Below are positions 1-61,661 of a stretch of 64,000 nucleotides of DNA, piece by piece. The position numbers and the translations under genes were made by a program. Position 1 is the stretch's first letter; each line of letters opens with the position of its first letter. Below the pieces are notes generated by a model. The model searched no databases and had not been told where the DNA came from. It saw only the letters and a list, made by a program, of their open reading frames with translations. Location of the stretch: IMG/VR virus record IMGVR_UViG_3300042879_006196, positions 248,001 through 312,000 of that record, one strand, 5' to 3'.

Positions 1-499
1 ATATGAGCTGATTGATCCAATTGAGAATTTTACATCTCTTGGCACATCAATTGATTCATCAGTGATGTTTTTTAATGCTACAAACACAAATTTTCAAGCT
101 GATCCAAAATTTCAATACTATCAAGGGAATGTTCCTGAATTATATTTAGATGGAGTGTTTCAAGCTACTGCAAAAGCTTTCAAAATTCCGCATCCGACAA
201 AGCCAAAAGTTCATCTTCAACATGGTTGTTTAGAAGGACCTGAATATGGGATTTATCTTCGAGGCACAGCATCAATAAATTACAAAACTTCTATAATTTT
301 GCCCGATTATTTTACAGCACTAACACAATCTGACTCTTACACTGTTAGTGTATCAAGTAATTCCTTTATACCAGTGAAACACAAGAAAGAAAAAAATAAA
401 GTGGTTTTTAGTTTATTATTTCCTACAATCAAGCCAATAGAAATAGATTTCTTAATCATAGATAAAAGAACAGACATTGATTTCAAATTGGAGGTTTAA
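1..499 (+). CDS. C-terminal part of a phage tail-fibre-associated protein (5' end lies outside the window)
   Basis: Frame is open from base 2 (YELIDPIENF...) into the listed ORF; KAFKIPHP..HLQHGCLEGPEYGIYLRG resembles the C-terminal domain of T4-like cyanophage fibre proteins (recall). Confidence 0.55.
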   Translation, partial: YELIDPIENFTSLGTSIDSSVMFFNATNTNFQADPKFQYYQGNVPELYLDGVFQATAKAFKIPHPTKPKVHLQHGCLEGPEYGIYLRGTASINYKTSIILPDYFTALTQSDSYTVSVSSNSFIPVKHKKEKNKVVFSLLFPTIKPIEIDFLIIDKRTDIDFKLEV

Positions 500-780
500 T
501 GTTTGGCGATTTAACTTTTGCAGGTGGCACATTTGCAGATATATTTGTAATATCTGGACAAATTGAATACTCTTATCGCAAAGGTCGCACTGCCGTTATT
601 GCTGTTATTCCTGAAAATGGTAGCGTGGTCACAGGTGTTAGTGCTAAATTCATTCGCTCTAAAGTTGAGGCAATTTTACCTGAAGAAGGAACAATAACAA
701 CTAATGTAATTGTGAGAAAATTAAGAACAAAAGTAGAAAAAACTAAAACTGTAAACACAAACCCTCAACCAGGTTTGTAG
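499..780 (+). CDS. hypothetical protein, probably virion-associated
   Basis: 93-aa ORF, GGAGG 5 nt upstream of ATG, start overlaps previous stop. Confidence 0.6.
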   Translation: MFGDLTFAGGTFADIFVISGQIEYSYRKGRTAVIAVIPENGSVVTGVSAKFIRSKVEAILPEEGTITTNVIVRKLRTKVEKTKTVNTNPQPGL

Positions 781-803
781 CTCCAAAACTTTAATATTAT
801 AAC

Positions 804-1160
804 GTGGCTAATTTATTTTATCGAAACACTAATGCTAAAATTTCTTTTGAAGTTCTTGATGCTAATAATAATTTAGTTGGCTTATCTACTTCAAGAGAGG
901 TATATTGGTATATTTTAACACCTGACAATCAGATTGTGTCAAATGATACAGATATTACCAGTTCTACATTTGCTAATGGCACACCAGTTTACTCTGCCAC
1001 ACCAGTAGTTCAAGAAGAAGAACCAGGCATTTATTACATTAATTATGTGTTGGCAAAGGTAGGTGAGTATAAATATAAATTTCAGGTGATTGACAATCCT
1101 ACATCAACAAATGTAGCTATTTCTGGAAATATAAAAGTAATAACTGACGGAATATTTTAA
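804..1160 (+). CDS. hypothetical beta-rich virion protein
   Basis: 118-aa ORF, GTG start 6 nt after TAATAT; GIYYINY/GEYKYKF strands suggest an Ig-like fold. Confidence 0.5.
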   Translation: MANLFYRNTNAKISFEVLDANNNLVGLSTSREVYWYILTPDNQIVSNDTDITSSTFANGTPVYSATPVVQEEEPGIYYINYVLAKVGEYKYKFQVIDNPTSTNVAISGNIKVITDGIF

Positions 1161-4100
1161 TGGCAAATACTAATAAAAATATATTGATTACTCCTGGTAT
1201 TGGTGGAATTTTATCTTCCTCAATATCACAAATCGATTTTATTTGGTATGAGTCTGGGATAGGCACAAATATTTTTGCTCCGAATATCAATGATCTACGT
1301 TCAACTATATACACTTGGGAACAAAATTCCGAGCCTGTGCTTTTGATTGGTGGTATAGGAACACTAAATAATCAACGAAAATTTGTTGGACCATATCAAG
1401 ATTTTGTTGGCAGTTTCACTGGTATATCAAGTTTTCCTAACATACAATTTTTTCCTTTGTCTGGAAAAATTGTAGGAAACACAATTTCAGTGAGTGGTGT
1501 ATCCACTTTAGCTGGTATATATTTATCAGGTCCTTTATATGATATAAACAACAGAAGTGGATCGTTTGGACAAATATTGTCATCTACCGCATCAGGTGTA
1601 GCCTGGACAAGCATTAGCTATACTGGAATTATTACTGCTATAGGTGGCATCACAAATAGATTAGCGAAATTTTTAGACGAAGATTCTTTAGGAAATAGTT
1701 CAATTATTGATAATGGTACACAAGTTATTTTTGGAGTGGGCGTATCAGTTTTAGGCTTCTCCACTTCTCTTGGGTTTTTTGGACCAGGTACTAATCTTAC
1801 TAATCTGAATGCATCTAATCTTTTCTTTGGCACAGTGCCTAGTTCAGTGGTATCAGGTTCTTATTCAGGCATAACATCTGTCGGAAATCTTTCCAACTTG
1901 TTTGTTACTGGTCTCAGTACATCTCTAGCTTATTTTGGTTTTGGTTCAAATCTTACTAATCTAAATGCATCTAATTTATTCTCTGGAACAGTGCCTAGTT
2001 CAGTGGTATCAGGATCTTATTCAGGTATTACATCTGTTGGTAATTTGTCTAGTTTGTTTGTTACTGGATTAACAACATCCTTCAGCTATTTTGGTTTTGG
2101 TTCAAACCTTACTAATCTAAATGCATCTAATTTATTCTCTGGAACAGTGCCAAGCTCAGTGGTATCAGGATCTTATTCAGGTATTACATCTGTTGGTAAT
2201 TTGTCTAGTTTGTTTGTGACTGGATTAACAACATCCTTCAGCTATTTTGGATTTGGTTCAAACCTTACTAATCTAAATGCATCTAATCTGTTTTCTGGTA
2301 CAGTGCCTTCCGCTCGTATTTCAGGTTCTTACTCAGGTATTACATCTGTTGGTAATTTGTCTAGTTTGTTTGTTACTGGATTAACAACATCCTTCAGCTA
2401 TTTTGGTTTTGGTTCAAACCTAACTAATCTAAATGCATCCAATCTGCTCTCTGGAACAGTGCCTAGTTCAGTGGTATCAGGTTCTTATTCAGGCATTACA
2501 TCTGTTGGTAATTTGTCTAGTTTGTTTGTTACTGGATTAACAACATCCTTCAGCTATTTTGGTTTTGGTTCAAACCTTACTAATCTAAATGCATCTAATT
2601 TATTCTCTGGAACAGTGCCAAGCTCAGTGGTATCAGGATCTTATTCAGGTATTACATCTGTTGGTAATTTGTCTAGTTTGTTTGTGACTGGATTAACAAC
2701 ATCCTTCAGCTATTTTGGATTTGGTTCAAACCTTACTAATCTAAATGCATCTAATCTGTTTTCTGGTACAGTGCCTTCCGCTCGTATTTCAGGTTCTTAC
2801 TCAGGTATTACATCTGTTGGTAATTTGTCTAGTTTGTTTGTTACTGGATTAACAACATCCTTCAGCTATTTTGGTTTTGGTTCAAACCTAACTAATCTAA
2901 ATGCATCCAATCTGCTCTCTGGAACAGTGCCTAGTTCAGTGGTATCAGGTTCTTATTCAGGCATTACATCTGTTGGTAATTTGTCTAGTTTGTTTGTTAC
3001 TGGATTAACAACATCCTTCAGCTATTTTGGATTTGGTTCAAATCTTACTAATCTGAATGCATCTAATCTGTTCTCTGGAACAGTGCCTAGTTCAGTGGTA
3101 TCAGGTTCTTATTCAGGCATTACATCTGTTGGCAATCTATCTAACTTATTTGTGACTGGATTAACAACATCCTTCAGCTATTTTGGATTTGGATCAAACC
3201 TCACTAATCTGAATGCATCCAATCTATTCTCTGGTACGGTGCCTAGCTCAGTGGTATCAGGCTCTTACTCAGGCATAACATCTGTTGGAAATTTGTCTAG
3301 TTTGTTTGTGACTGGATTAACAACATCCTTCAGCTATTTTGGTTTTGGTTCAAACCTAACTAATCTCAATGCATCTAATTTATTCTCTGGAACAGTGCCT
3401 AGTTCAGTGGTATCAGGATCTTACTCAGGTATTACATCTGTTGGAAATTTGTCTAGTTTGTTTGTGACTGGATTAACAACACTTAATAATATAGAAATTG
3501 ATGGTTGGTTAAGAGATTCAAATAACTCAATTGGTTTAAGTGGTCAAATTTTATCTTCTACCTCAAATGGAATTGCGTGGACTTCCATAAGTGCCACTGG
3601 TATTATTACTTCGATAGGAGGATTAACTAATCGTGTTTCAAAATTTGTAGATGAAGATTCTTTAACTAATTCCAATATTACAGACAATGGCTCAGTGGTA
3701 GATGTCAATTCAGTTTTTTCAGTTAGTGGTATTTCTACTTTTGCTAAGGACATAATTGTAAATTTTGTAAATATTGGACTTGGCGAAAATCAAAATATTT
3801 CAAACACTGTTTTTGGAAATCAAGCACTTGTAAATAACACAGGTATCTTTAACGTAGCGATAGGAGCATCTGTTTTAAATGCTAATACCACAGGTTTTTC
3901 AAATGTTGGTCTTGGCTTTAGCGCATTAGCTTTTAACTTATCTGGTTTTGCTAACATTGGTATTGGTGCGAGAGCTTTATCTGGAAATGTATCTGGAAAC
4001 AACAATATTGCAATTGGGCAATTTTCTTTAAGGAGTAATTTAACTGGTGGACAAAACGTAGCAGTAGGAAGGCTTACTTTATTCCAAAACATTTCTGGAA

Positions 4101-7100
4101 ATAACAATTCTGCTTTTGGTGATTTAGCTTTAAGAAACTGGGACGTGTCATCAAATCAAACTGGTATAGGATATCAGGCTTTACAAGGAAATTCTACTGT
4201 TACACTCAATACTGGCGTGTTCAATGTTGCTATTGGCAATATGGCTGGTATGGCTGTCAGTTCTGGATCTTATAATACTTTTGTGGGTTCACAAAGTGGT
4301 GATCAAACAACTACAGGAAGTAACAATACTTTCTTGGGCGGTTTCACAAATGGATTAATTTCTGGTGATTATCAAATTGCTATTGGTCAGTCTGTTGTTG
4401 TTTCTGGCTCCAATCAAGGAGCATGGGGAGGCACAACAAACGTTACTCGGACAAATTTAGGAATTGGAACTTTTAATCCTCTTTCAAGACTTCATGTAGA
4501 AACTCTTGCTGCTGGCAACATGGGGCTTTATATTGCTGGATCTGCATCTCAAACCGCCGATTTAGTAGAAATAAATGCCACAACAAATGGTCAAAATTAT
4601 TTTACAATTACTGGAATTGGCTCTGTTGGTATCTATACATCTTTGCCTTCACAGCAATTTCAAGTGAATGGCAATGCAAGGGTTACAGGTGGAATCTTTG
4701 ACTCAAATAACTTTATAGGTTCAGCTAATCAATTATTGTCATCAACAGGCTCTGGAATTGCGTGGACATCTACAGCAGGAGCAGGAATTGTAACTGGCGC
4801 TGGTGTAGCAACAAGAATTGCTTACTTTAGCGGTCCAAACACTTTAACAAGCAATTCTAATTTTATTATTGATTCCAACGGTAATTTTGGAATTAGCACA
4901 TCAGCTCCAAGAAACAGACTTGAAGTAAGTAGTTCAGCAAGATTCAGCGCAAGTGTTATTTTTTACGGTTCAACCGCAAATGAAGCTTTTGCACTCACAC
5001 AACTATTTGACACCACTTATTTTAACACTAACAACGTATTGAGATTCAGACAAGGAGGGTCCACTGCTGGAGCGATAGCATTCTCTTTTTATGACTTTTT
5101 GCCTAACTTGTTTATGACGTTAGATGGTTCTAATGCACCAAGAGTTGGGATAGGTACGACTGGACCTTTGCAAACGTTGCATGTTGGTGGAAATACATTA
5201 ATATCAGGATTGACAACAGCGTTTAGCTATTTTGGATTTGGTTCAAATCTTACTAATCTGAATGCATCAAATCTATTCTCTGGTACAGTTCCTAGTTCAG
5301 TGGTATCAGGTTCTTACACAGGTATCACTTCTGTTGGCAATTTAACTAATTTAAATGTAATAGGCATTTCAACGGTTACTAATTTTAGAGTATTAAATGG
5401 TTTATATGACTCAAATAATTTAGTTGGATTAGCAAATTCAGTTTTATCTTCAACAGGTTCTGGTGTGCTTTGGGTAGCCCCTGCGAGCGGAGGTCCAGGC
5501 GGTGGTACTATTAATGGCACGATAGAAGCAAATAGAATTGCTTTTGGGGCTGCGAGCAATACTATTACAGGCATTTCTACTTTTGTGTATAGTAACCAAG
5601 GCTTTATTGGCATAAACACTTCAAACCCAAACGCAAACTTAGATGTCCAAGGCACTTTCTTGGCAACAGGAATGTCCACTTTCTTAAATCTTAATGTTTT
5701 AGGTAGACTTTATGACAGAAGCGTTGGGAGTGGTAATACAGGTCAAATTTTAGTATCAACAAATTCTGGAGTAGCTTGGACAACAATTGATGCAATTTTT
5801 TATCAACTTGCAGATTCACAAATAGCATTTGGGCTAGGCAGTGATACCATTTATGGTGTTTCCACTTTTGTTTATAGTGGGGGTAACTTGGGTATTGGCA
5901 CTTCTGCGCCACTGCAGACACTTCATGTTGTCGGCAATGCGTTAATATCAGGTCTCACAACATCTTTAGCTTACTTTGGCTTTGGTTCAAACCTTACTAA
6001 TCTAAATGCATCTAATCTGTTCTCTGGAACAGTGCCAAGTTCAGTGGTGTCAGGTTCTTATGCAGGTATTACATCTGTTGGCAATCTATCTAACTTATTT
6101 GTAACTGGTATTGCTACTCTCGTTAATGCTGAAATAGATGGCTGGCTTAAAGACAGAAGTGGATCTATTGGCACTCTTGGTCAAGTGTTATCATCCACTG
6201 GTTCAGGTGTTGCATGGTCATCTGTTTCATCTATTGGCATTATTACTGGTTCAGGAACCATAAATACTATTGCTAAATTTGGTGCATCTAGCTCTTTAAT
6301 TAATTCAAATATCACTGATAATGGTATTGCTGTTACTGTAAACTCAAGAGTATTTGTCAACGGAATTGGGTCATTCTTGGGTGATATTTTTGTTAATCAA
6401 ATGACTGTTGGTCTAGGAAGTCAACAATCTACTGGTAATGTAGCAATTGGTTTTCAGGCTTTTCAGACAGCTTCTCCTTCTGCTAGTGGCAATGTTGCTG
6501 TTGGCGACAGGGCTATGCAAACTACTTCTAATGCAATTTTTGGAAATGTAGCTATTGGACAATTAGCTCTTGCGGTTAACCAAGCGAACAGAAACATTGC
6601 TATTGGCGCACAGGCTTTAAGCTCAAATACTTCTGGCACTGGAAATATAGCTATTGGTCATCAAGCTTTATCTTTAAGTACTGTTGATTTAGGAAATATT
6701 GCAATCGGCGATAGGGCAATGAGGTTCCTTACTGGAGGAAGTGGAGGAAATAACATTGCAATAGGTGGTGGTGCTAACTTAACTACAGCTGCTGAAACAA
6801 CTTTTGTTGGAGCTACCGCTGGCAATAATTACACCACTCAAGGGCAACACGTTGCAGTTGGGGCGTATGCTTTAGTTGGTGTGTCTACAACTGCTGCAAC
6901 TGGAACTCAAAATACAGCTATCGGATATTCAGTAATGACTGGAATTACAGGTGGCAGTGCAAACGTTGGATTAGGGCACTTTGCGTTAAATGCTCTTACT
7001 TCAGGTAATAGCAACACTGGATTGGGATATTTTGCATTGGTTTCAAATACCACAGGTAGCTTTAATGTGGCAGTGGGCAGAGAAGCGTTAAGATATTACA

Positions 7101-9538
7101 CAACTATAAGCAATCAAACAGCTGTTGGTTATCAAGCTTTGCGTGGTAATTCTGATACTACTTTGAATACTGGCACAAGCAATGTAGCTATTGGTTATCA
7201 GGCTGGTCTTGCTAATTCATCTGGATTTTTAAATACATACTTAGGACACCAAGCTGGTTTAGCCAATGCCAACGGAACTCACAATACTTTTATAGGCGCA
7301 ACTGTTGGATCGGCTTCTACATCTAATCACAACACGATTATTGGGGCGGCTTCATATCAGGCTAACAACTTGGGCGAAGCAAACATTGTTGTTGGTAGCC
7401 TTTCTGCACAACTAAACACTTCTGGCAGCTACAACACAGTTGTAGGATACAATGTGTTTAATAGTAACACTACTGGTGGTAACAATGCGGCGTTTGGCTT
7501 TAATGCATTAGCGTCTAATAATACTGGTGGTCAAAATATTGCGATTGGTAGATTTGCTTTAAGATACTATAATCAATCAAACCAGGTAGCAATAGGTGAC
7601 CAGGCATTACAAGGTAGTAGCACTGTATCCCTCAACACAGGAACACAAAATACTGCAATAGGATATCAAGCAGGTTTTGCAAATACTTCTGGCTCTAACA
7701 ATGTTTTTGTGGGTTATCAGGCAGGCTTAGCAAATACTTCTGGCACAGATAATACTTTTGTTGGAAGTACGTCAGGAAGAGTAAATGATTCTGGGAGCAA
7801 CAATACGGCAGTGGGTTCAGGATCTTTACCAAGTAACACTTCAGGAACTCTAAACTCTGCTTTTGGTGCTACAGCCCTTAACAGTAACTCTACTGGTTCA
7901 CAAAACTCTGCTTTTGGCTATGGAGCTTTAAATGCCACTATATCTGGTTCTAATAATTCCGCTTTTGGATTTAATGCTTTGCAAAATAATATTTTAACAA
8001 GCGGTAATACTGGCATGGGTAGAGATGCATTAAGATATTACGCTAACTCAGACAATCAAACTGCTGTAGGTTTTGGAGCTTTGCGAGGAAATGGTACTGT
8101 AGCCCTCAACACTGGAACCCAAAATACTGCTATGGGCTATCAGGCTGGTATAGCAAATACCTCTGGCTCTAACAACGTATTTGTCGGTTATCAGGCAGGC
8201 TTAGCAAATACTTCTGGGAGCAACAATACAGCCGTCGGCAATCAATCTTTAGCAAATAACTCAGTTGGTATTCAAAATGTAGCTGTTGGAAGTTTTGCAT
8301 TATTCTATAATTTAAATGGTAATTATAACATTGCTATAGGGCAAGATACTTTAAGAAATTATGAAACACAAGGTTTGCAAATAGCTATTGGGTATAGAGC
8401 TTTAAGAGGAAGTGACACAAGATCTTCTAACACAGGGTTTTCTAACGTTGCTGTAGGAAGAGAAACTTTAAGCATAAATACGTCTGGCTCTAACAACACT
8501 GCTCTTGGAACGTTAGCAGGTACTGTTAATAATAATGGTAATCAAAATACTTTTGTTGGAGCACAAAGTGGGGACGGAAATACTTCAGGGTCTTCAAACA
8601 CATATCTCGGTTATCTCACAGATGGAGCCCCTTCAGGCAACTATCAAATTGCAGTGGGTGATAGTGTAACGCTTACTGCATCCAATCTTGGTGCATGGGG
8701 TGGTAATACTAACTCCACTCGCACTGACCTTGGTATTGGTACTTTTACGCCACTAGCTCGTTTACATGTTGAAACATTAGCCGCTGGAAACATGGGCTTG
8801 TATATTGCAGGATCTGTATCACAAACTGGCGACTTAGTAGAGGTAAATGCCACGGCAAATGGTCAAAACTATTTCACGATTACTGGAATTGGCTCTGTTG
8901 GTATTTATACTTCATTACCTGCACAAGCCTTAGATGTAAGAGGCAATCAGATTGTGTCTGGTATATCAACAGCGTTTAGTTTCTTCGGTTTTGGTTCAAA
9001 CCTTACTAATTTAAATGCATCTAGTCTGTTCTCAGGAACAGTGCCAAGTTCAGTGGTATCAGGATCTTACTCAGGAATAACATCTGTTGGAACATTATCA
9101 CAATTGAGTGTTTCAGGATTTTCTACTTTAAAGAATTTTGAATCTAGTGGTCAATTTAATTTTTATGGAACTTCAAACCTTGATAACCAAAGAGTGTTTA
9201 CTGGAGCATCTTCTTCAATTAATCAAACTACATTTGTAGGCATGACTTCTATTGCAGTTCCTGTTGGTTATCAATTAACAATTGAAGGTAAAATCAATGG
9301 ATGGTTCAATGAAAGTTTCAATGAAAGCGGTAGATTCTTCGCTGTATTTAATAACTCAATTGGAATTGTTTCTATAATTGGTCAGCCAGACATTACATCT
9401 AAATTTGTTGGATCAAGTGGTAATTTTGACATACAAGCCCAAGGACCCAATGTTGTTATTGTTACTAAATCTAACGCATCTTCCAATATGTGGCTATGGA
9501 AAACATCTTATGATTACTTACTTACACAAAATGTATAA
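1160..9538 (+). CDS. giant tail fibre / adhesin-like protein (2792 aa) with 52-aa tandem repeats and YadA-head-like N(T/V)A(V/I)G repeats
   Basis: G/S/T/N-rich ORF; many NTAVG/NVAIG beta-roll repeats and GIGTxxP...LHV.G fibre motifs; tail-module context. Confidence 0.75.
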   Translation: MANTNKNILITPGIGGILSSSISQIDFIWYESGIGTNIFAPNINDLRSTIYTWEQNSEPVLLIGGIGTLNNQRKFVGPYQDFVGSFTGISSFPNIQFFPLSGKIVGNTISVSGVSTLAGIYLSGPLYDINNRSGSFGQILSSTASGVAWTSISYTGIITAIGGITNRLAKFLDEDSLGNSSIIDNGTQVIFGVGVSVLGFSTSLGFFGPGTNLTNLNASNLFFGTVPSSVVSGSYSGITSVGNLSNLFVTGLSTSLAYFGFGSNLTNLNASNLFSGTVPSSVVSGSYSGITSVGNLSSLFVTGLTTSFSYFGFGSNLTNLNASNLFSGTVPSSVVSGSYSGITSVGNLSSLFVTGLTTSFSYFGFGSNLTNLNASNLFSGTVPSARISGSYSGITSVGNLSSLFVTGLTTSFSYFGFGSNLTNLNASNLLSGTVPSSVVSGSYSGITSVGNLSSLFVTGLTTSFSYFGFGSNLTNLNASNLFSGTVPSSVVSGSYSGITSVGNLSSLFVTGLTTSFSYFGFGSNLTNLNASNLFSGTVPSARISGSYSGITSVGNLSSLFVTGLTTSFSYFGFGSNLTNLNASNLLSGTVPSSVVSGSYSGITSVGNLSSLFVTGLTTSFSYFGFGSNLTNLNASNLFSGTVPSSVVSGSYSGITSVGNLSNLFVTGLTTSFSYFGFGSNLTNLNASNLFSGTVPSSVVSGSYSGITSVGNLSSLFVTGLTTSFSYFGFGSNLTNLNASNLFSGTVPSSVVSGSYSGITSVGNLSSLFVTGLTTLNNIEIDGWLRDSNNSIGLSGQILSSTSNGIAWTSISATGIITSIGGLTNRVSKFVDEDSLTNSNITDNGSVVDVNSVFSVSGISTFAKDIIVNFVNIGLGENQNISNTVFGNQALVNNTGIFNVAIGASVLNANTTGFSNVGLGFSALAFNLSGFANIGIGARALSGNVSGNNNIAIGQFSLRSNLTGGQNVAVGRLTLFQNISGNNNSAFGDLALRNWDVSSNQTGIGYQALQGNSTVTLNTGVFNVAIGNMAGMAVSSGSYNTFVGSQSGDQTTTGSNNTFLGGFTNGLISGDYQIAIGQSVVVSGSNQGAWGGTTNVTRTNLGIGTFNPLSRLHVETLAAGNMGLYIAGSASQTADLVEINATTNGQNYFTITGIGSVGIYTSLPSQQFQVNGNARVTGGIFDSNNFIGSANQLLSSTGSGIAWTSTAGAGIVTGAGVATRIAYFSGPNTLTSNSNFIIDSNGNFGISTSAPRNRLEVSSSARFSASVIFYGSTANEAFALTQLFDTTYFNTNNVLRFRQGGSTAGAIAFSFYDFLPNLFMTLDGSNAPRVGIGTTGPLQTLHVGGNTLISGLTTAFSYFGFGSNLTNLNASNLFSGTVPSSVVSGSYTGITSVGNLTNLNVIGISTVTNFRVLNGLYDSNNLVGLANSVLSSTGSGVLWVAPASGGPGGGTINGTIEANRIAFGAASNTITGISTFVYSNQGFIGINTSNPNANLDVQGTFLATGMSTFLNLNVLGRLYDRSVGSGNTGQILVSTNSGVAWTTIDAIFYQLADSQIAFGLGSDTIYGVSTFVYSGGNLGIGTSAPLQTLHVVGNALISGLTTSLAYFGFGSNLTNLNASNLFSGTVPSSVVSGSYAGITSVGNLSNLFVTGIATLVNAEIDGWLKDRSGSIGTLGQVLSSTGSGVAWSSVSSIGIITGSGTINTIAKFGASSSLINSNITDNGIAVTVNSRVFVNGIGSFLGDIFVNQMTVGLGSQQSTGNVAIGFQAFQTASPSASGNVAVGDRAMQTTSNAIFGNVAIGQLALAVNQANRNIAIGAQALSSNTSGTGNIAIGHQALSLSTVDLGNIAIGDRAMRFLTGGSGGNNIAIGGGANLTTAAETTFVGATAGNNYTTQGQHVAVGAYALVGVSTTAATGTQNTAIGYSVMTGITGGSANVGLGHFALNALTSGNSNTGLGYFALVSNTTGSFNVAVGREALRYYTTISNQTAVGYQALRGNSDTTLNTGTSNVAIGYQAGLANSSGFLNTYLGHQAGLANANGTHNTFIGATVGSASTSNHNTIIGAASYQANNLGEANIVVGSLSAQLNTSGSYNTVVGYNVFNSNTTGGNNAAFGFNALASNNTGGQNIAIGRFALRYYNQSNQVAIGDQALQGSSTVSLNTGTQNTAIGYQAGFANTSGSNNVFVGYQAGLANTSGTDNTFVGSTSGRVNDSGSNNTAVGSGSLPSNTSGTLNSAFGATALNSNSTGSQNSAFGYGALNATISGSNNSAFGFNALQNNILTSGNTGMGRDALRYYANSDNQTAVGFGALRGNGTVALNTGTQNTAMGYQAGIANTSGSNNVFVGYQAGLANTSGSNNTAVGNQSLANNSVGIQNVAVGSFALFYNLNGNYNIAIGQDTLRNYETQGLQIAIGYRALRGSDTRSSNTGFSNVAVGRETLSINTSGSNNTALGTLAGTVNNNGNQNTFVGAQSGDGNTSGSSNTYLGYLTDGAPSGNYQIAVGDSVTLTASNLGAWGGNTNSTRTDLGIGTFTPLARLHVETLAAGNMGLYIAGSVSQTGDLVEVNATANGQNYFTITGIGSVGIYTSLPAQALDVRGNQIVSGISTAFSFFGFGSNLTNLNASSLFSGTVPSSVVSGSYSGITSVGTLSQLSVSGFSTLKNFESSGQFNFYGTSNLDNQRVFTGASSSINQTTFVGMTSIAVPVGYQLTIEGKINGWFNESFNESGRFFAVFNNSIGIVSIIGQPDITSKFVGSSGNFDIQAQGPNVVIVTKSNASSNMWLWKTSYDYLLTQNV
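1787..3480 (+). repeat. 11 tandem copies of a 156-bp (52-aa) coding repeat
   Basis: Units start at 1787, 1943, 2099, 2255, 2411, 2567, 2723, 2879, 3035, 3191, 3347; consensus GSNLTNLNASNLFSGTVPSSVVSGSYSGITSVGNLSSLFVTGLTTSFSYFGF. Confidence 0.95.
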
Positions 9539-10288: not shown

Positions 10289-11637
10289 GTGCTACTGGTG
10301 GACCTTCTATAAGCACAAGAAATCTTATCTTAAACTATGATCCAAGTAACTTTTTTTCATATAATGGTGTAGGTAACACTATTAACGACTTGTCTAGATC
10401 AAGTTTTTCTGGTGCATTGAATAATATTGTTTTCTCACAACAAAATCAAGGCATATTATCTTTTAATGGGTCTTCTTCTTTCATAACTGGAAATACTGGA
10501 TTTGGAACAATTTTAAATTCAGGTAATTACTCTGTGAATGCCTGGGTTTTTTTAAGCTCTTTAAGCACTGCTTCAATTTTCAATAACTTTTGCGTGGGTA
10601 TAGGTTCCACCTTTCTTGTGCCTTCAGTTTCTCAAAATGCTGGGCAAGCAGGCTCAGTTGCAGGAACTCTTACGCCAGGTTCGATTATTGTGGGCATGTC
10701 TGGCATAATTTCCACTTTACCAAATGTTTCATTATCAACAGTTTTTGATAATAGAAATGGAAATATTTATTCTATTACTGGTGGATTAACACAGCAAATT
10801 GTAGGTATTGATGCCATTAATAGGTTTTGTACTTTTTATCATTGGTATGGGGTTAATACATCTAGCGCCACAGGTTTGACTGTTAACTTTCAATACACTG
10901 GTGGTACTCCAACAATAAATTATAATAACTTTGTGGAAGTAATAAATTGTGATACAAAACCTGGTTTTGTAGAAAGTAGTGTTTCTGTGAATTATTTTGG
11001 GGCAGGTGCCACTAACACTCCGCTTTTTGCTTCAACTCGAATAAGGGATTTTGTTTACACTTCAAATTTTGGTAGATTTAACATCACTCCAACTTCGGGA
11101 ACTTTAAGTGGAAATTTGCAATTCACATCAGCGTTTGGAGGTAATGGTACTTATGGTTTATCTGCTAATTATGCGGTTCAAAACCCTATAGGATTTAACA
11201 GTGTTTATTATGCTGGCGGCTTAGGTGCCACTGGTTTTATTGGCGCAACTATAATAAAATCTTTAAATCCATACCGAGATGGAACACAAAACGCTGGAAT
11301 GGTTATAAATAATGGTGTAATTGCTTCAAGAACTACTACGCAAATTTACAACACCACACAATCTGTTTCAGTATCTAGATGGAATAATGTTTGCATTGTT
11401 TATTCTGGAATAGGTGCATCCACATATTTAAATGGCAATCTTGTGTCTACTCAAGATGCAGCTAAATTAGTTGCTTCAGTAGGGGTTACTAGTTTTGTCA
11501 TTGGTTCTAATGGTGTAACTACAAATTCTGAAGTATTAAATGGTAACATTGGATATATTGGAATTTACAACACAAACCTCACACAATCTGAAGTTACAAA
11601 CAATTTTAATGCTTTAGTGAGCAGGTTCATAGCTTAG
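10285..11637 (+). CDS. LamG-like virion protein with a large central insertion
   Basis: LNYDPSN..SY.G.G.T.NDLS start and WNNVCIVY..YLNG..NG.IG.I.IYN..LT.SEV.NNF end, separated by about 250 aa of unrelated beta-rich sequence. Confidence 0.65.
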   Translation: MSATGGPSISTRNLILNYDPSNFFSYNGVGNTINDLSRSSFSGALNNIVFSQQNQGILSFNGSSSFITGNTGFGTILNSGNYSVNAWVFLSSLSTASIFNNFCVGIGSTFLVPSVSQNAGQAGSVAGTLTPGSIIVGMSGIISTLPNVSLSTVFDNRNGNIYSITGGLTQQIVGIDAINRFCTFYHWYGVNTSSATGLTVNFQYTGGTPTINYNNFVEVINCDTKPGFVESSVSVNYFGAGATNTPLFASTRIRDFVYTSNFGRFNITPTSGTLSGNLQFTSAFGGNGTYGLSANYAVQNPIGFNSVYYAGGLGATGFIGATIIKSLNPYRDGTQNAGMVINNGVIASRTTTQIYNTTQSVSVSRWNNVCIVYSGIGASTYLNGNLVSTQDAAKLVASVGVTSFVIGSNGVTTNSEVLNGNIGYIGIYNTNLTQSEVTNNFNALVSRFIA

Positions 11638-11676
11638 GTAAAAACCCAAAAAAATAAGAATATTAATTTGTAGTGT

Positions 11677-39234: not shown

Positions 39235-39274
39235 TCATGCATATTATACATAAACTTCGATGTACAATAAAATA

Positions 39275-44556: not shown

Positions 44557-44562
44557 TTACAT

Positions 44563-44572: not shown

Positions 44573-44576
44573 TTAC

Positions 44577-54447: not shown

Positions 54448-54496
54448 AATCTTATTTTAAAAGAAATTTAATCAAAAACCTACCGTATATATAATA

Positions 54497-55171
54497 ATGA
54501 TTATAAGCTGTTCGTACAAAAAAAGAGTGGGCAAAGATACATTTTGCCGAATTGTTAAAGAACTTTATCCTGATAAGAAGGTGGAAAGAGTAGCTTTCGC
54601 TGATGAGCTCAAAAAAGAATTAGACACAATCTTACTTATACCTAATGGCTTATCAAGAAATATGTTTGAGGATGACAATGTAAAAGAAATTGCCAGACCT
54701 TTACTACAAGGATGGGGCACAATTCGTAGAGAGTTTTGTGATAAGAATTATTGGGTAAAACTGGCTTTTTGGAGAATGCAAGACCCAGACACAATCTACA
54801 TTATCACTGACGCAAGATATTTAAATGAAATCGAATTTATCAACTCTCAAGGTGGGCACACTGTTCATATTAAAAGGGATTTACACGGATATAAGGCGTG
54901 GCTCAAAAGTCTTTCACATACTAAGTATTCTTGGGCTTCACACATTCTGCTCAGACCGTTTTTGATTGTGTTTTATCAGATTGTGTCTAGAAATAAAAAG
55001 TTTTTGAGCAAATCTGCAGACCCATCATCTTCTCATTCTTCAGAAACTGAATTAGACAATTATCATCATTTGTTTAAATACACAATCGAGAATAATGGAA
55101 CAGAAGCTGAGTTCAAAGAAAAAATTAAAATAGTTGTAGAAGATATATTTAAGCAGGAAAAAAAAATTTAA
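54497..55171 (+). CDS. deoxynucleoside monophosphate kinase (T4 gp1-like) with a 43-aa insertion
   Basis: KRVGKDT, FAD.LK, R.LLQ.WGT..R, WV, ITDARY.NE, H.SETELD. Confidence 0.8.
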   Translation: MIISCSYKKRVGKDTFCRIVKELYPDKKVERVAFADELKKELDTILLIPNGLSRNMFEDDNVKEIARPLLQGWGTIRREFCDKNYWVKLAFWRMQDPDTIYIITDARYLNEIEFINSQGGHTVHIKRDLHGYKAWLKSLSHTKYSWASHILLRPFLIVFYQIVSRNKKFLSKSADPSSSHSSETELDNYHHLFKYTIENNGTEAEFKEKIKIVVEDIFKQEKKI

Positions 55172-55188
55172 ATACCTAAAAACAGATT

Positions 55189-58014
55189 GTGTGGTATCGG
55201 TATTGCAGATTAATTATAGCGAAAAAAGAACATATAATTGCCAAAATTTACAATCATTTTAGGGAAGAATATGAAAATTCTCCAAATGATTTATATATTC
55301 TTGATGATATAAAAGAAAAATTATTAAAATTAGATGAAATAAATTTTTTTGATCAAAACATAATTGAATTAAACACTGATAAAAACACTAATAAAAAAAC
55401 TGTTAATTTTTTAGGAAAAGTTTGTGAAAGTTTAACTGATTTAGCAGAAGCTGTTGATCCCGTGTACGATGAAGTAATGTACAAAAAAGAATATAAACAA
55501 GAAAAGAAAAAACAACAAAGTTTACAAGCTTTAGAGTTTATTGCTGGAGAAGTTCAAGTATATCCCTGCAATGATGTCAATGATACAATAAGATTTGGAA
55601 GGGGTACCACTTGGTGCATTTCTCAACCTGGTACAGGTATTAAAGCTTATAACTCATACAGACTTAATCACCAATCTACTTTTTACTATGTGCAAGATGG
55701 AACAAGAACAGACAATTTGAAAAGAGTGATGGTAGATATGCAAGCAAACGGTGTTGTCAAACTCACTGATTTTGGTAACACCACTGGTACAATAGCTGAA
55801 TTTGGTACAGATTGGCAAGCATATTTTGACTATTTGAAAGAAGAAAAAGAAGTAGATATTTCTCAATTTGTTAATAAACCATTAACAGAAGAAGAAAAAA
55901 AAGAAATCAATACACTTAGTGAAAGAAACACCGATTACGAATGGTTTAAAAAATTATCATCAGATTATAAATCTAAATATATTGGCATGGGTCATCTTTT
56001 GTCTGATGATCAACTAAGATATATTTTGAAAAGTTCTTTGAAAGACATTTTAATTCGGGAGTACTTGAATACAGGTACCTGTATTACAGAAAGCCAAAAA
56101 AATATGTTATTTACAAATAATCAATACAAAAATACTTATGAGTTTAGAAGAACAAATTATATTAATGAAATAAAAGCACAAGTTACTGAAGATTACAAAC
56201 TTAAAAATTTAGCACTGGGTTCAAATGATTTCGATTTAATCACAGAACTTATAAATGAAGGAAAAATTACAAAAGACCAATTCATGAAAGTTCAGTCTCC
56301 TGAAATGTTCTTTTTTTTGATGGATCAAGATTTTGATAAAAAGCGTTTAGTTGAATCTAATGCAGAACATAATTTTACAATTGACTATTTAAGTTCATTG
56401 CCTGCAAACGAGAGCAAAAATCTTTTATCTGGGGTTCTTTTAAGTAATCTGGCTGCAATTAGAAAACTTTATGCTAATGGTATGATAACTAGCAATAATA
56501 TAAATTGGTATGCCGTATTTATATGGAATTATGGATTTGAATTTTCAGATATCGAATTGTTTAGTAACTTGTATAAACAAAGTGTTTTTCAGGAAGATAT
56601 CGATCAAAAATTGAAACAAACTGAAGTTAAAACTCAATATAAAGCAGCTTTTTACCTTTCCAATAATATTAAAACAGATAAACCAATTGATTTCGCAACT
56701 ATATTATCTATAGGTATTGATGAAAAGCTTAAAGCTTTTTATTATCAATATTTTGATACCTTAACGCCAGATCAAAAAAAATATATTCTTGATAGAGTAT
56801 CTTTTGGTTATGGAAATAATAATTTCTTAATATCATTGGGTAAAAAAATAGATTCTCTTGATGAAAAAGATCTATTTAGAGTCATAAACTCAGCTGACGC
56901 ACAAGCAATGTTTGCTTTATCAAAACAACTTGCAAAAAATGATTTGCAAATTTTGATCAACGATGATAAAGCAAGATTCAGTAATCAACTTACCATACAA
57001 TGGCTTTTAAGTAATAATTTTGATGTGCAAGCCAAGAATATGGATTTTGCAGCACTTTTTTCTTCTGATCATGAAATAGCAGATTTTGTTTTTGAAAAAT
57101 TTGAAAACTTAAGTAGTGAGGAACAAAAAAAACTGTTTGGTAGCTTTTACGTCCAACCAAAATCTATTAAAGTAGCAAAATATTTATTTGAAAAAGGCGC
57201 ATCTTATTTCTTAAGGTTTGTTACATTCGACATCATTGATGCAATAATTAGTTCTATGACTAATCTGCCTTATGAAGCATGGGATAATATTTCAGGTAAT
57301 GAAAAAATTTATAACAACAACGAATTTATTATGAAGTATATACCAAATTTAATTGGTAAATTTAGTTTTGCATATAGTGCTCCGTTAAGATTTTTTGACC
57401 TTATCTTTGAGAAATTTAACAATTTTGAACGTAATCAAGATTGGATAGTAAGACAATTTTGTTCTCATAATAAATCTTGCAATGAACAAGTGGCAGAAAA
57501 ATATATAAAAAAATATCCTAGCTTAAAAGAAGTTATTATTCAAGCTTTTGTGGATAATTATAGCGGTAAAATTCCTTCAGAAGATTTTATAAATAAATAT
57601 TACGATGAAATTTCAGAATTTATTGGTTATCTTTATCGCTATAAAAATTTTACTGAAGATTACATAAGAAAATTTGCTGACAAAATAAAATTTGATAGAG
57701 TTCTTATGTCAACAAAAAATTTATCAAATGAATTTTTTGTTGATTTTGAAGAAAAAATTGCTGAGATTCCTGATCGTGAAATGAATGATATACTAGAAAA
57801 TACAACGTTACCTGAATATTTTTTGAGTAAATTTGCACATAAATTTAATGATTATAATTGGCGCCAAATATCAAGAAAATTTCAATTATCTGAAAATTTT
57901 ATTATAAAATTTGCAGATAAATTAGATTTTCAATATATTAAATATAATGAAAATATTCCAGACGTAGTGAAACAAAATTTAAAAGTAAAAGGATATGCAG
58001 TTGATATATTATGA
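55189..58014 (+). CDS. large mosaic protein (941 aa) with C-terminal (L/F)SE.FI..F.DK helical repeats
   Basis: GTTWCIS..YNSY..FYYV.D N-terminal domain; repeats such as LPEYFLSKFAHK, LSENFIIKFADK. Confidence 0.6.
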   Translation: MWYRYCRLIIAKKEHIIAKIYNHFREEYENSPNDLYILDDIKEKLLKLDEINFFDQNIIELNTDKNTNKKTVNFLGKVCESLTDLAEAVDPVYDEVMYKKEYKQEKKKQQSLQALEFIAGEVQVYPCNDVNDTIRFGRGTTWCISQPGTGIKAYNSYRLNHQSTFYYVQDGTRTDNLKRVMVDMQANGVVKLTDFGNTTGTIAEFGTDWQAYFDYLKEEKEVDISQFVNKPLTEEEKKEINTLSERNTDYEWFKKLSSDYKSKYIGMGHLLSDDQLRYILKSSLKDILIREYLNTGTCITESQKNMLFTNNQYKNTYEFRRTNYINEIKAQVTEDYKLKNLALGSNDFDLITELINEGKITKDQFMKVQSPEMFFFLMDQDFDKKRLVESNAEHNFTIDYLSSLPANESKNLLSGVLLSNLAAIRKLYANGMITSNNINWYAVFIWNYGFEFSDIELFSNLYKQSVFQEDIDQKLKQTEVKTQYKAAFYLSNNIKTDKPIDFATILSIGIDEKLKAFYYQYFDTLTPDQKKYILDRVSFGYGNNNFLISLGKKIDSLDEKDLFRVINSADAQAMFALSKQLAKNDLQILINDDKARFSNQLTIQWLLSNNFDVQAKNMDFAALFSSDHEIADFVFEKFENLSSEEQKKLFGSFYVQPKSIKVAKYLFEKGASYFLRFVTFDIIDAIISSMTNLPYEAWDNISGNEKIYNNNEFIMKYIPNLIGKFSFAYSAPLRFFDLIFEKFNNFERNQDWIVRQFCSHNKSCNEQVAEKYIKKYPSLKEVIIQAFVDNYSGKIPSEDFINKYYDEISEFIGYLYRYKNFTEDYIRKFADKIKFDRVLMSTKNLSNEFFVDFEEKIAEIPDREMNDILENTTLPEYFLSKFAHKFNDYNWRQISRKFQLSENFIIKFADKLDFQYIKYNENIPDVVKQNLKVKGYAVDIL

Positions 58015-58611: not shown

Positions 58612-59181
58612 ATGAAAAAAAAAATTTTTAAAATAATCTTTACTGTTGTAACCGTTTTTATGCTGGCATCAATTTCTTTTGCACAATTCGATGGAGCTGA
58701 TAAAAAACTCACTGTGGAATACAAAAATTCAGATGTGAGAGAAGTGGTGATTTCAATTCTGAAATCCGTAAATTTGAGCTACACTCTTTTTCCAGAAGTA
58801 CAAGGACAAGTGACTGTATCAGTAAAGGACGTGCCTCTTTTAACAGTATTAGAGAACATTCTTCAGCAAGTGGACTGTACATGGTCTTATGCAGGTGGAG
58901 TTGTTGTTATCAAAAAAAGAGAATTACCTCCTACCGAACCACAATCTCAAGAAATTACTTCAACACAATCTGGAAAACCTGCAAAAGTAATCAGAAAACT
59001 TATCATTCGCAGTAGTGACCCTTTGCTTATTGCTATGCTGTTAAGTGGAAGCCAAAATTATTTTGGTTCACCTGAGCCAACACAATCTTCATATTCTTTT
59101 GGTGGCTTTGGAAACAATATGATGGGTGGTTTTGGTGGATTTAGTGGGCAGGGCGGTTTTGGAGGAAATAACCTTAGATAA
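58612..59181 (+). CDS. secreted secretin N-terminal (STN/N0-like) domain protein lacking the secretin barrel
   Basis: Signal peptide (..ASISFA/Q), LTVEYKNSDVREVV....QGQVTVSVKDVP....LENILQQ, RKLIIRSSDP.LIAMLL, Gly/Phe-rich tail. Confidence 0.7.
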   Translation: MKKKIFKIIFTVVTVFMLASISFAQFDGADKKLTVEYKNSDVREVVISILKSVNLSYTLFPEVQGQVTVSVKDVPLLTVLENILQQVDCTWSYAGGVVVIKKRELPPTEPQSQEITSTQSGKPAKVIRKLIIRSSDPLLIAMLLSGSQNYFGSPEPTQSSYSFGGFGNNMMGGFGGFSGQGGFGGNNLR

Positions 59182-59182
59182 A

Positions 59183-59207
59183 AAAGGCTTCCATTATGGA
59201 AGCCTTT
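59183..59207. terminator. hairpin terminator between convergent genes
   Basis: AAAGGCTTCCA-TTA-TGGAAGCCTTT. Confidence 0.8.
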
Positions 59208-59211
59208 CAAA

Positions 59212-59535
59212 TTAGTTGTTTAGATTAGCTATCTCTTCAGCTTGCTCTAATGTATAAGAATCAACTAAGCCAAGTGCTGGTTGTTCCAGAGCTTCTGTCG
59301 CAGCTTTAACTTTTTCAAGTTCTGACAATATATTACTTAAGTGTTTTTCCACTTCTGTAAGTTTTGTCTCAGACCATGTGCCAGCTCTTCCCATTAAAAA
59401 GTTCAAATTCATGAATTGTACTTTGTTGTGGAATTTGTTGACAATAATATCTATCTTGTAAACGTGCAAAAGCACTTCTTTTAATTTTTCGACTTTTAAT
59501 TTTTCGTCCATGTTTATTTTATACATTTTTTTCAA
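59212..59535 (-). CDS. hypothetical coiled-coil protein
   Basis: 107-aa ORF. Confidence 0.5.
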   Translation of the reverse strand: MKKMYKINMDEKLKVEKLKEVLLHVYKIDIIVNKFHNKVQFMNLNFLMGRAGTWSETKLTEVEKHLSNILSELEKVKAATEALEQPALGLVDSYTLEQAEEIANLNN

Positions 59536-59602
59536 AAGCTTAATTGTTTCTTAACATAATTAAGAAGATTATAGTAACCAAAAAATGTAAATAAATAATG
59601 TT

Positions 59603-60634
59603 ATGCTAAAATCTAAAGCTTTCACTTTAATAGAGCTTTTGGTGGTAATTGCCATCATAGCCATTCTCGCCGCAATTCTGTTCCCTGTTTTCGCTCAAGC
59701 AAAATTAGCCGCTAAAAAAGCGTCTGATTTAAGCAATGTTAAACAAATGGGTCTTGGTATTACTTTATATACAGGTGACAATGATGATATGTATCCTTCT
59801 GCTTACTATCACAGAGCTTTTAATCCTGCTCTTGGTGGAACCAACGCTGGATATATTCACTGGTCAGGCATGGTGATGCCTTATGTTAAAAACGTACAAA
59901 TGTTTGTATCACCTGGTGATACCATTCGTGGTCATGCTCCAACATGTTTCTCTTCAGCTGATAACAATAGTGGCGCAGGTGCTCCAGGCGGACAGGCAGC
60001 AAACGTATGTACAGCTAACCCTGCAATTGTTCCACCTCAATTTGTACGAGGTGGTGCGATTGTGGATGAGCAAGTTCCCCGCATTTCTTACACTGTTAAT
60101 TCTTTGGTAATTCCTAGATACCGAAATATTGGTGATGTCAATAGAGGCATTTCTTTGGTGAGCCAAACTCAGTTGGATAATGTTTCAAACATCATCTTGC
60201 TTGCTGGATTTACAAGAAATCTTCCCTGTCTTTCATCAGCTTCTATCACTTCAACGACTAGAAGTGCATCGCACCGATCAACCAATGCAGTCACAAGAGA
60301 CTCAGCAAATACTCAGGTTTATTTTGGTAGTCAAGAAGACGGGGCTTCACGACCTTCTAGTTTGTTTGCTCTGAATTGGAACAATCTTGCTTCTAGTAAT
60401 ATTTTCAATTTATGTGCAACAAATCCACGAACAGATTACCCTCTCATTGTGTATCATGGTTATAACAATTGGAATAACTCTGGTGATAATTATGGCATGG
60501 CAGATGGTTCTGCTAAATATCGACCATTCAGACAAACAATTGCTCCAACAAACTATCTTTGGGGGACAAGAGCGTATACTGATGGCAATCTTCCTATCTT
60601 AGATCCAGTGTCTGGCTTGCCAGTGCAAGGTTAA
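59603..60634 (+). CDS. prepilin-type N-terminal cleavage/methylation protein with a C-terminal H...DG-like motif
   Basis: KA/FTLIELLVVIAIIAILAAILFPVFAQAK..AKK.SDLSNVKQMGL....Y..D.DD.YP; C-terminal H...NYGMADGSAK. Confidence 0.92.
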   Translation: MLKSKAFTLIELLVVIAIIAILAAILFPVFAQAKLAAKKASDLSNVKQMGLGITLYTGDNDDMYPSAYYHRAFNPALGGTNAGYIHWSGMVMPYVKNVQMFVSPGDTIRGHAPTCFSSADNNSGAGAPGGQAANVCTANPAIVPPQFVRGGAIVDEQVPRISYTVNSLVIPRYRNIGDVNRGISLVSQTQLDNVSNIILLAGFTRNLPCLSSASITSTTRSASHRSTNAVTRDSANTQVYFGSQEDGASRPSSLFALNWNNLASSNIFNLCATNPRTDYPLIVYHGYNNWNNSGDNYGMADGSAKYRPFRQTIAPTNYLWGTRAYTDGNLPILDPVSGLPVQG

Positions 60635-60637
60635 TAA

Positions 60638-60659
60638 AAAGCCCTCAATTGAGGGCTTT
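60638..60659. terminator. palindromic bidirectional terminator
   Basis: Perfect 22-bp palindrome AAAGCCCTCAATTGAGGGCTTT between convergent stops. Confidence 0.8.
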
Positions 60660-61113
60660 AAGCATCTTGAAAAACTAATTTTTGAATTCCATCTTCCTTA
60701 ACTGTTCCAACCTGAACAGCACCTGCAGAATTTATAAGTTGGTCTGCTCCTCCAGAAGATCGATTAATTTTTGAGCCATTACATGAAATATATGGCAAAT
60801 CTGGATAACCATTTGATCTCAGCCAATCTTTGAAAGCATTTGCATCTCCTGCGATAAGGTTTCCTCTTTCTCCAAAAACTAATTTTCCATCTTCAGTGCC
60901 GTGTAGCAACCAAATACTCCTTTGTGTTCCATCGCTTGTTTTGATTTGCACTTGTTTAGGTGGGTCATCAGGTCCCATAAAAAACTGACCTCCTACCAAT
61001 TCTACTTCAAGCCTTCCTTCACTTCCTGAGGGAATCATTTGCCTATAAGAATTGGGATCTAATTCTTGAACATTAGGATTTTGTGAACTGAGTTTGCTGA
61101 ATTTGTACCACAC
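60658..61113 (-). CDS. hypothetical protein (MWYK N-terminus)
   Basis: 151-aa ORF, GTG start. Confidence 0.55.
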   Translation of the reverse strand: MWYKFSKLSSQNPNVQELDPNSYRQMIPSGSEGRLEVELVGGQFFMGPDDPPKQVQIKTSDGTQRSIWLLHGTEDGKLVFGERGNLIAGDANAFKDWLRSNGYPDLPYISCNGSKINRSSGGADQLINSAGAVQVGTVKEDGIQKLVFQDA

Positions 61114-61124
61114 AATTTATATTT

Positions 61125-61661
61125 TCAGCTAAAAAAAGTAAAATCCTTGTCGGTAAATTTTTCACATTCTTCAAAAGGTTTACCAAGTTTGTCTTTATCT
61201 GACACAATCTGAGGAAAATCTTTCCAAGGAATGTCAAGACTGTTGTAAAGTAAAGATCTGTCATTTTCTTGACAATAATAATTAGAGCATTTGTAATAAA
61301 CCACGCTATTATCTTCTAGCGATTGAAATCCATGTGCAAAGCCTTCTGGAATAAATATAGCCAAATGATTTTCGCTTGATAATTCGATGTCAAACCATTT
61401 ACCAAAATAGGGCGATTGCTCTCTTAAATCTACAGCAACATCATATATTTTTCCTGCCAAACAATACACTAATTTTGCTTGTGGAATTTGAACTTGATAA
61501 TGCATGCCTCTAATCACTCCTTGTTTAGAAATTGAACAATTATCTTGAACAAATTTAACAGGAAAAATTTTATCTTTATGCAAAAAAGTTTCAGTGAATT
61601 GTCCTCTATAATCTTGGAAACATTTTAAATTAACTATTTTAATTCCACCAAAAGGCTCCAT
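61125..61661 (-). CDS. rmlC: dTDP-4-dehydrorhamnose 3,5-epimerase
   Basis: D.RG.F.E, VQDN.S.S..GVIRGMHYQ, QAKLV, DVAVDLR.QSP.FG.W, IPEGFAHGF. Confidence 0.95.
   Translation of the reverse strand: MEPFGGIKIVNLKCFQDYRGQFTETFLHKDKIFPVKFVQDNCSISKQGVIRGMHYQVQIPQAKLVYCLAGKIYDVAVDLREQSPYFGKWFDIELSSENHLAIFIPEGFAHGFQSLEDNSVVYYKCSNYYCQENDRSLLYNSLDIPWKDFPQIVSDKDKLGKPFEECEKFTDKDFTFFS

Follow-up and report, generated by a model that had tools for sequence, protein, structure and literature searches.

A dispersed nine-base word in a freshwater jumbo phage, also placed in its early promoters: a putative recognition site for a DNA-binding protein

We describe here a nine-base word, AGATTGTGT (ACACAATCT in the other orientation), that is scattered through the 347,392-bp genome of an uncultivated jumbo phage (IMGVR_UViG_3300042879_006196). 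The motif was studied in a window of 64,000 nucleotides (contig positions 248,001-312,000) and in a second stretch, contig 19,547-73,207, made up of eight adjoining loci that were reached by pattern scans of the viral collection; together these amount to 118 of the 347 kb. Our data support the conclusion that the motif is a signal at the level of DNA and not of peptide: it exceeds codon-preserving null models, recurs in related phages and is under purifying selection. As to its function, we give about an even chance to the possibility that the word, with a favoured G beside it, is the putative recognition site of a double-strand DNA-binding protein, a regulator or initiator specific to a clade of freshwater jumbo phages. 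Its presence in half of the early promoters and in two repeat arrays makes this the most likely reading, and such a protein would be of a kind not yet described.

Abundance, placement and conservation of the motif

A DNA search found 39 exact copies of AGATTGTGT in the window (21 plus-strand and 18 minus-strand), a density of about 1 per 1.6 kb, where zero-order base composition predicts 0.81. The over-representation reported in an initial annotation of the window was thus confirmed and is stronger than had been noted (39 copies against about 1 expected); the 36 coordinates given there are all right, but three minus-strand copies (25975, 58963 and 59080) had been missed, and the last two of these lie in the STN-domain gene that had been described as free of the motif. 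Dinucleotide shuffles gave a mean of 1.08 and a maximum of 3 copies, and permutation of codons inside coding sequences gave 0.69 and 0.33 for the two orientations (about 1.0 in total). Even a synonymous-codon shuffle that preserved every protein, the kind of null model against which the initial annotation had proposed to set the count, yielded 7.4 expected copies and 14 at most, and so does not reproduce the 39 observed. Single-mismatch variants occur 0-7 times each, near expectation, and it follows from this background level that all nine positions matter. The word is G/T-rich, asymmetric and without C. Its flanks are unrelated save for a weak preference after ACACAATCT for G (22/39) and then A; 22 of the 39 copies extend to CAGATTGTGT, and the base preceding ACACAATCT is not conserved.

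The window has a G+C content of 32.5% and an ORF-based (open reading frame) gene set that covers ~97% of it, and 36 of the 39 copies are contained entirely in called coding sequence. They occur in every one of the six codon phases, in line with the earlier claim that no single peptide explains the motif. The sense strand of coding sequences reads ACACAATCT in 22 cases and AGATTGTGT in 15, an enrichment over the codon permutation of ~32-fold and ~45-fold for the two orientations relative to transcription. The mild bias of 22 to 15 is accounted for by codon composition, which alone predicts 0.69 to 0.33, and the equal enrichment of both orientations points to a function of double-stranded DNA. 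Across all phage loci the orientations split 75 to 46. A runs test on the order of strands in the window counted 19 runs where 20.4 would be expected (P=0.38); the order is random, and the motif shows no orientation polarity there. Selection for the word has altered proteins: the tripeptide TQS occurs 13 times against 3.7 expected and is spelled ACACAATCT in 13 of 13 cases (expected fraction 0.15), and all seven DCV tripeptides are motif-encoded where 0.9 DCV would be expected. The copies are clustered, with 11 gaps shorter than 230 bp where 5.0 would be expected (P=0.004). Their median distance from a gene boundary is 131 nt, compared with 232 nt for random positions (P=0.01), and the five largest genes, for which about 11.6 copies were expected, contain 2. 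Two other ideas about the dispersed copies were dropped: that they are internal promoters, there being no -10-like hexamer or TAnnnT element downstream of the dispersed window copies, and that they mark recombination breakpoints, given that homology blocks in general do not end at motif copies.

The motif is not confined to the window; it recurs elsewhere on the contig and in relatives, the two places where the initial annotation had asked for enrichment. Contig 19,547-73,207, whose motif contexts lie 175-230 kb from the window on the same genome, holds 136 copies. The groEL-80% relative has 15 copies in 21.6 kb and, in a further piece, 17 in 21.2 kb; another relative has 18 in 21.8 kb, the groEL-72% relative 7 in 21.6 kb and the groEL-61% relative none. 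When the window was aligned to the groEL-80% relative (flank identity ~0.77), 8 of 12 sites were exact against 1.29 expected from neighbouring 9-mers, and most of the non-conserved sites had one or two bases changed. This positional conservation in a related phage, where the initial annotation had proposed to look for it, indicates purifying selection on the sites, with some gain and loss.

Early promoters, arrays and small genes

The second stretch contains 47 near-identical intergenic cassettes of the form TTCCAGGTTTA-N10-ATTATAAT, running from L125:1419 to L071:8789 (contig 34.2-67.8 kb) with one at L138:896 (20.4 kb). The N10 word is ACACAATCTG in 23 of the 47 cassettes, ACATAATCTG in 7, ACATTTCCTG in 6 and others in the remainder; among these spacer words only ACACAATCTG is dispersed in the window. 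It sits between the -35 and the -10, 3 nt upstream of the -10 hexamer. In a promoter scan every listed L071 cassette (22 by the exact pattern) scored as TTTCCA-18-TATAAT, which is sigma-70-like. Most cassettes have an ATG 4 nt past the -10 and no Shine-Dalgarno sequence, so their transcripts look leaderless. A GC-rich hairpin usually precedes the promoter, and in about ten cassettes an inverted second copy of the motif lies 12 nt upstream, the pair flanking a -35-like hexamer at 22 bp centre to centre. The cassettes precede small early genes, some of which encode nucleotidyltransferases or an ArdC-like anti-restriction protein, and tRNA genes lie scattered among them.

When metagenomes were scanned with the ArdC-like early protein, early regions of relatives were obtained over a range of 35-100% identity. 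The promoter type (TTYCC..., spacer, TATAAT, ATG) is common to every lineage at ≥55% identity; the -35 side varies among them and the core CACAATCT stays directly upstream of the -10. Promoters that have the core number 20 of 22 and 18 of 22 at 55-58% identity and 26 of 31 at 77% identity, there as TCACAATCT, and the full 9-mer occurs outside promoters in these lineages at 0.1-1.1 per kb. In a lineage at 60% the core is missing from all 15 promoters and 20.8 kb contain just 4 copies; at ≤43% identity the loci lack both the promoter type and the motif. Since the core in promoters and the dispersed copies covary across lineages, promoter use and dispersal go together. The dispersed copies are nevertheless not copied from promoters; lineages with TCACAATCT in their promoters still disperse the full ACACAATCT.

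Two non-coding arrays were also found. The first, at L125 367-540, is a fourfold repeat of a 46-bp unit in which two sites spaced by 10 bp are accompanied by a DnaA-box-like word. In the second, at L071 9340-9460, the core CACAATCT recurs in about nine units of 14 bp, and the non-coding DNA beyond it, up to 9860, is AT-rich and bears G-tracts. Array copies have degenerate first bases and helical phasing, and an Rfam search of the array regions returned three tRNAs only. The L071 array is adjoined by a gene (L071:9868-11421) that begins within a motif copy and is one of three paralogues (the others at window 55189-58014 and L071:13549-14163) with a GTG start inside the motif, as is also the case in a relative. 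This family, which we call WYRYCRL after its N-terminus ((V/M)WYRYCRLIIA), ends in 'LSEDFIREFxDKVxW' repeats and has 33 homologues, all from related phages. It gave no PDB sequence match and no Pfam domain, and a model of the N-terminal 251 residues (mean pLDDT, the predicted local distance difference test score, 77) gave no PDB fold match at E<=0.001.

The motif further spells the beginning of ~48 tandem small ORFs (47-62 aa) at L138:2619-13266 and L125:5-366 (contig 22.2-33.2 kb), which are translationally coupled through ATGA stop/start overlaps and all begin MINTDCV. They are built of W/Q/V-rich 'QVWDQV'-like repeats and have a strand GC skew of about +0.6; five members searched against Pfam gave no match above the family cut-off. 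A tRNA array as the source of these ~170-bp periodic copies was rejected, as ARAGORN found none there and the copies are the small ORFs.

What might read the motif

We favor the possibility that the motif is bound by a clade-specific protein whose most likely role, as far as sequence can suggest, is that of a regulator of early promoters, perhaps also active at an origin-like or partition-like region. The exact, asymmetric word, its fixed place between -35 and -10, the inverted partner two helical turns away, the phased arrays and the orientation-free conserved copies all fit a site bound on double-stranded DNA. The protein would bind operators in early promoters as a regulator, most simply as a shut-off repressor because it would sit between -35 and -10, and the same protein may be an initiator or partition factor at the arrays. 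For the dispersed sites we infer a role as extra docking points that would load, concentrate or titrate the protein along the phage chromosome, a network that might serve global control or organisation. The suggestion of the initial annotation that the word is a binding site for a phage DNA-organising protein comes close to this explanation; its interpretation as a whole is only partly supported.

Several points weigh against such a protein. Nine fully specified base pairs are a great deal for one small domain to read, and we know of no operators or iterons that occur throughout coding DNA, in either orientation alike, at a density of ~1 per 1.6 kb. No partner motif was detected within 150 nt of the dispersed sites after multiple-testing correction. 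Pfam and PHROGs searches of 47 early-region proteins recovered the ArdC-like anti-restriction protein and nucleotidyltransferases, and no recognisable helix-turn-helix (HTH) or other DNA-binding domain; nor was a repressor combining an HTH with a stoperator domain found among these 47 or among the scanned window proteins. The array-adjacent candidate, the WYRYCRL family, has no fold or sequence relative outside related phages. Finally, the spacer is weakly constrained and the cassettes and small genes are paralogous, so that part of their counts could stem from a motif that had been 'parked' in such places and was later amplified.

Among known systems the nearest is that of the stoperators of cluster A mycobacteriophages, in which an asymmetric site bound by a monomer of an L5 gp71-type repressor has one copy on the early lytic promoter and >20 further genomic copies, about 1 per 2 kb, with a lineage-specific consensus (PMC9283540). 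The phage studied here likewise has an asymmetric site in early promoters, between -35 and -10 in 23 of 47 cassettes. However, the two defining features of stoperators, orientation lock and intergenic placement, fail here: stoperators are 13-mers in short intergenic gaps with their orientation locked to transcription, whereas our motif is 9-10 bp long, lies in coding sequence in 36 of 39 cases and has both orientations equally enriched. Moreover, the DNA examined of this 347-kb jumbo phage gives no hint of lysogeny, and the proteins scanned include no repressor homologue. DnaA boxes and plasmid or phage iterons resemble the motif as asymmetric 9-mers with phased tandem copies by an AT-rich non-coding stretch, promoter copies and possibly titrating extras, and the tandem direct repeats beside an AT-rich region that characterise an iteron-type replicon are present (L071 9340-9460, together with the four units at L125 367-540). 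Nevertheless, DnaA boxes are not tens-fold enriched inside genes, and no initiator gene was recognised here. The cassettes themselves recall the T4-type PeSL (promoter-early plus stem-loop) cassettes, which are repeated intergenic units of a hairpin and a sigma-70-type promoter before small early genes (PMC2839356, PMC4122927). In both, near-identical units with a GC hairpin and then a sigma-70-type early promoter stand before many small early genes, but the likeness concerns the cassette only; the 9-mer can be absent from the spacer and is also scattered on its own.

Among the alternatives, the one to which we grant the most, though clearly less than to a promoter-bound regulator, is that the 9-mer is a genome-wide 'address' of this clade of lake jumbo phages, read on double-stranded DNA by a dedicated phage protein regardless of orientation, that marks, organises or protects the phage chromosome versus host DNA; promoters and arrays would then be specialised uses, with selection for the word strong enough to rewrite proteins. 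It is unlikely, in our view, that the motif is a promoter or start-site element of a phage-encoded RNA polymerase like the late promoters of giant phages, with motif cassettes acting as dual early-plus-late promoters and intragenic copies as internal sense or antisense promoters. There is precedent in phage AR9, where the late promoter is a short word, AACA-(6N)-TA/G, with some copies internal or antisense, and where continuously expressed genes have both promoter types (PMC5312081). Short conserved words and genes with two promoter types are thus shared with AR9/phiKZ-type systems, the cassettes read AACACAATCTG with the motif in only half of them, and three window copies are at gene starts. 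However, AR9/phiKZ-type promoters lie upstream of genes in the sense direction; here a set distance upstream of genes in sense holds only for the cassettes and those three copies, 36 of 39 copies are internal, spread over all relative positions and not near the 3' ends of upstream genes, antisense copies are enriched as strongly as sense copies, the base before ACACAATCT is not conserved and tandem arrays with 10- and 14-bp phasing are unlike promoters. We regard as no more probable than this a Chi-like or 'self' mark that a nuclease of host or phage would read, so that the ends of phage DNA are spared from resection. A G/T-rich, asymmetric, exact word without C at ~1 per 1.6 kb and under strong selection inside genes is what one would look for in such a mark, and a circularly permuted linear genome would profit from both orientations. 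On the other hand, neither a promoter-spacer position that stays fixed across lineages nor helically phased arrays whose first bases are degenerate would be predicted for a Chi-like mark; the polarity of Chi follows replication whereas the strand order of the motif in the window is random, and uniform cover would be expected where the largest genes are in fact depleted. A scan of 185,579 species genomes for motif pairs is also relevant: among at least 120 loci it returned local tandem arrays and chance pairs, and there was no bacterial genome with dispersed copies among the matches listed.

The same scan bears on the possibility that the motif is the DNA uptake sequence (DUS) of a naturally competent host, mirrored in the phage, which we consider barely credible. 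Density, sharpness and strand symmetry resemble those of the Neisseria DUS and the Pasteurellaceae uptake signal sequence (USS), inverted pairs occur between genes, and pilin-like and STN-domain proteins are encoded in the window, though nothing ties these two proteins to the motif. Like Chi, DUS and USS are short, exact, asymmetric, coding-embedded words at ~1 per 1-2 kb that bias protein sequence, but all of these are features of bacterial chromosomes tied to uptake or to RecBCD/AddAB, and they have neither a fixed promoter position nor phased arrays. Here the distribution of the motif goes with phage lineage and the build of the promoters, what comes after the inverted pair is a -10 element instead of a T-run, and a lytic-type jumbo phage has no evident route to uptake drive. 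For these reasons the parallels with Chi and uptake sequences drawn in the initial annotation are not supported. A target of sequence-specific modification (methylation or hypermodification), with clusters at promoters and the origin-like region serving a modification-dependent process as GATC does in E. coli, is somewhat less probable than a polymerase promoter or a Chi-like mark. Recognition is exact, clusters together with dispersed copies resemble GATC, and the phage has S-adenosylmethionine (SAM, AdoMet) cycle genes (ahcY at 48950-50182 and an AdoMet-decarboxylase-like gene). Against this, nine contiguous specified bases would be unusual for a methyltransferase, and no DNA methyltransferase was found in the 118 kb examined, where the methyltransferases are of the sugar or small-molecule type. 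It is very improbable that the dispersed copies are a passive by-product of short-patch conversion from the >100 repeated copies in cassettes and small-gene starts, or of an RNA-level seed. Many identical donor copies do exist on the same genome. Nevertheless, dispersed copies share only 9-11 nt with the donors, their sites are positionally conserved, lineages with TCACAATCT promoters still disperse the full ACACAATCT, and the equal enrichment of both strands speaks against a role at the RNA level.

For groEL and ahcY the nearest cellular sequences share 51-63% identity and come from scattered taxa, with no clear donor. The multi-copy matches of the scan for motif pairs are tandem arrays, and among them were arrays of clustered regularly interspaced short palindromic repeats (CRISPR) with a 47-nt repeat containing CAGATTGTGT, at L148, L209 (a Cyclobacteriaceae metagenome-assembled genome, MAG, from Lake Mendota), L159 (Ohtaekwangia) and L230; their spacers had no match in the 118 kb of phage DNA. 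The overlap of the repeat with the motif is probably a coincidence, although the IMG sample number of the Lake Mendota MAG is near that of the phage contigs. A literature search with the two 9-mers returned primers and unrelated uses only.

Copies along the window and what the motif means

The window encodes tail-fibre-like giant proteins, groEL, a large sugar-biosynthesis cluster, ahcY, a deoxynucleoside monophosphate (dNMP) kinase, a pilin-like protein and a GH108 lysozyme, and the identical groEL protein is present on contigs from several lake metagenomes. Window k-mer counts also show many repeated 12-14-mers. Single copies of the motif occur at 323-331 (minus strand; ORF 62-499, read as TQS) and 931-939 (plus; ORF 804-1160, read as QIV). 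The genes for two giant tail-fibre-like or virion proteins (1160-9538, 2792 aa; 11677-15381, 1234 aa) are both strongly depleted in the motif; the plus-strand copy at 8949-8957 is the sole one in the 2792-aa repeat protein, where 5.1 would be expected at mean window density. Three minus-strand copies (11356, 11581 and 12658; 11356-12666) lie in two tail-fibre-like genes, all in TQS phase. The fibre genes are adjoined by a gene for a PT-HINT/intein-like domain protein (15873-16826), in which the minus-strand copy at 16347-16355 is exactly conserved in the relative L008. Plus-strand copies at 16846, 17136, 17584 and 17941 (16846-17949) fall in four small minus-strand genes just beyond a convergent gene junction, and ORF 20384-20962 contains an opposed pair (20429-20632), of which 20624 (plus) is conserved in L008 and 20429 (minus) is one base off there. 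A further convergent junction is flanked by copies at 25241, 25832 and 25895 (plus) and 25975 (minus) (25241-25983), three of which are read as DCV.

A ~22-kb cluster for nucleotide-sugar synthesis and glycosyl or methyl transfer occupies 26240-48233; its gene content varies among relatives and includes GDP-mannose dehydratase, DegT aminotransferase, fucosyltransferase-like GT10/GT11, GT25 and FkbM members. Sugar-pathway genes hold the copies between 28085 and 33093: 28085 (plus) in the GDP-mannose-dehydratase-like gene, conserved in L008, 31950 (minus), and 33085 (plus) in the DegT-type aminotransferase gene. Five copies follow at 36800 (minus), 36940, 37973 and 38974 (plus) and 39719 (minus) (36800-39727); the first lies 5 nt after the ATG of ORF 35998-36813 (MSDCV), and the last is outside the chosen gene set but within a 229-aa ORF (39260-39949). 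Glycosyltransferase and methyltransferase genes carry copies at 43736 (minus), 44201 and 45610 (plus) and 46457 (minus) (43736-46465), and ORF 50812-51195 has a plus-strand pair 206 nt apart (50865 and 51071; 50865-51079).

The five-copy cluster at 54444-55192 is on mixed strands. The copy at 54444 overlaps the GTG start of an 834-aa gene at a divergent junction and is exactly conserved in the relative L140, as are 54624 and 54789 in the dNMP-kinase gene. That gene has a 45-aa in-frame insert (54885-55008), which is missing in L140 and homologous to the C-terminal end of the L140 DCC1-like protein, and the copy at 54978 lies inside it; the copy at 55184 contains the GTG start of the 941-aa WYRYCRL-family gene. 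The remaining copies are minus-strand (58963-61210): 58963 and 59080 in the STN-domain gene and 61202 in a dTDP-sugar epimerase gene, with 59080 and 61202 conserved in L140. The STN-domain protein (58612-59181) and a protein with a type IV pilin N-terminal methylation motif (59603-60634) are both kept in the relatives L140 and L262. The groEL of several relatives (P0013, P0016 and others; 867 aa) is ~330 residues longer and has LAGLIDADG-type domains (PF14528, in some together with PF05204), which suggests an intein; the window groEL has no such domains. IS605 OrfB/TnpB-type genes are inserted in relatives (L140:11909-13096; L261:16748-18070), and the window phage has no such gene at those places.

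To our knowledge, few short words are under genome-wide selection (uptake sequences, Chi, the FtsK-orienting polar sequences KOPS, the highly iterated palindrome HIP1 and stoperators), and each of them revealed a machinery. In this 347-kb phage, which occurs widely in lakes, the word described here shapes coding sequences and is also tied into early promoters and arrays. It offers a sequence signature by which members of the clade and their early promoters may be recognised in metagenomes, and a 10-base oligonucleotide would provide a handle for fishing out a regulator or chromosome-organising protein of an uncultivated phage clade.

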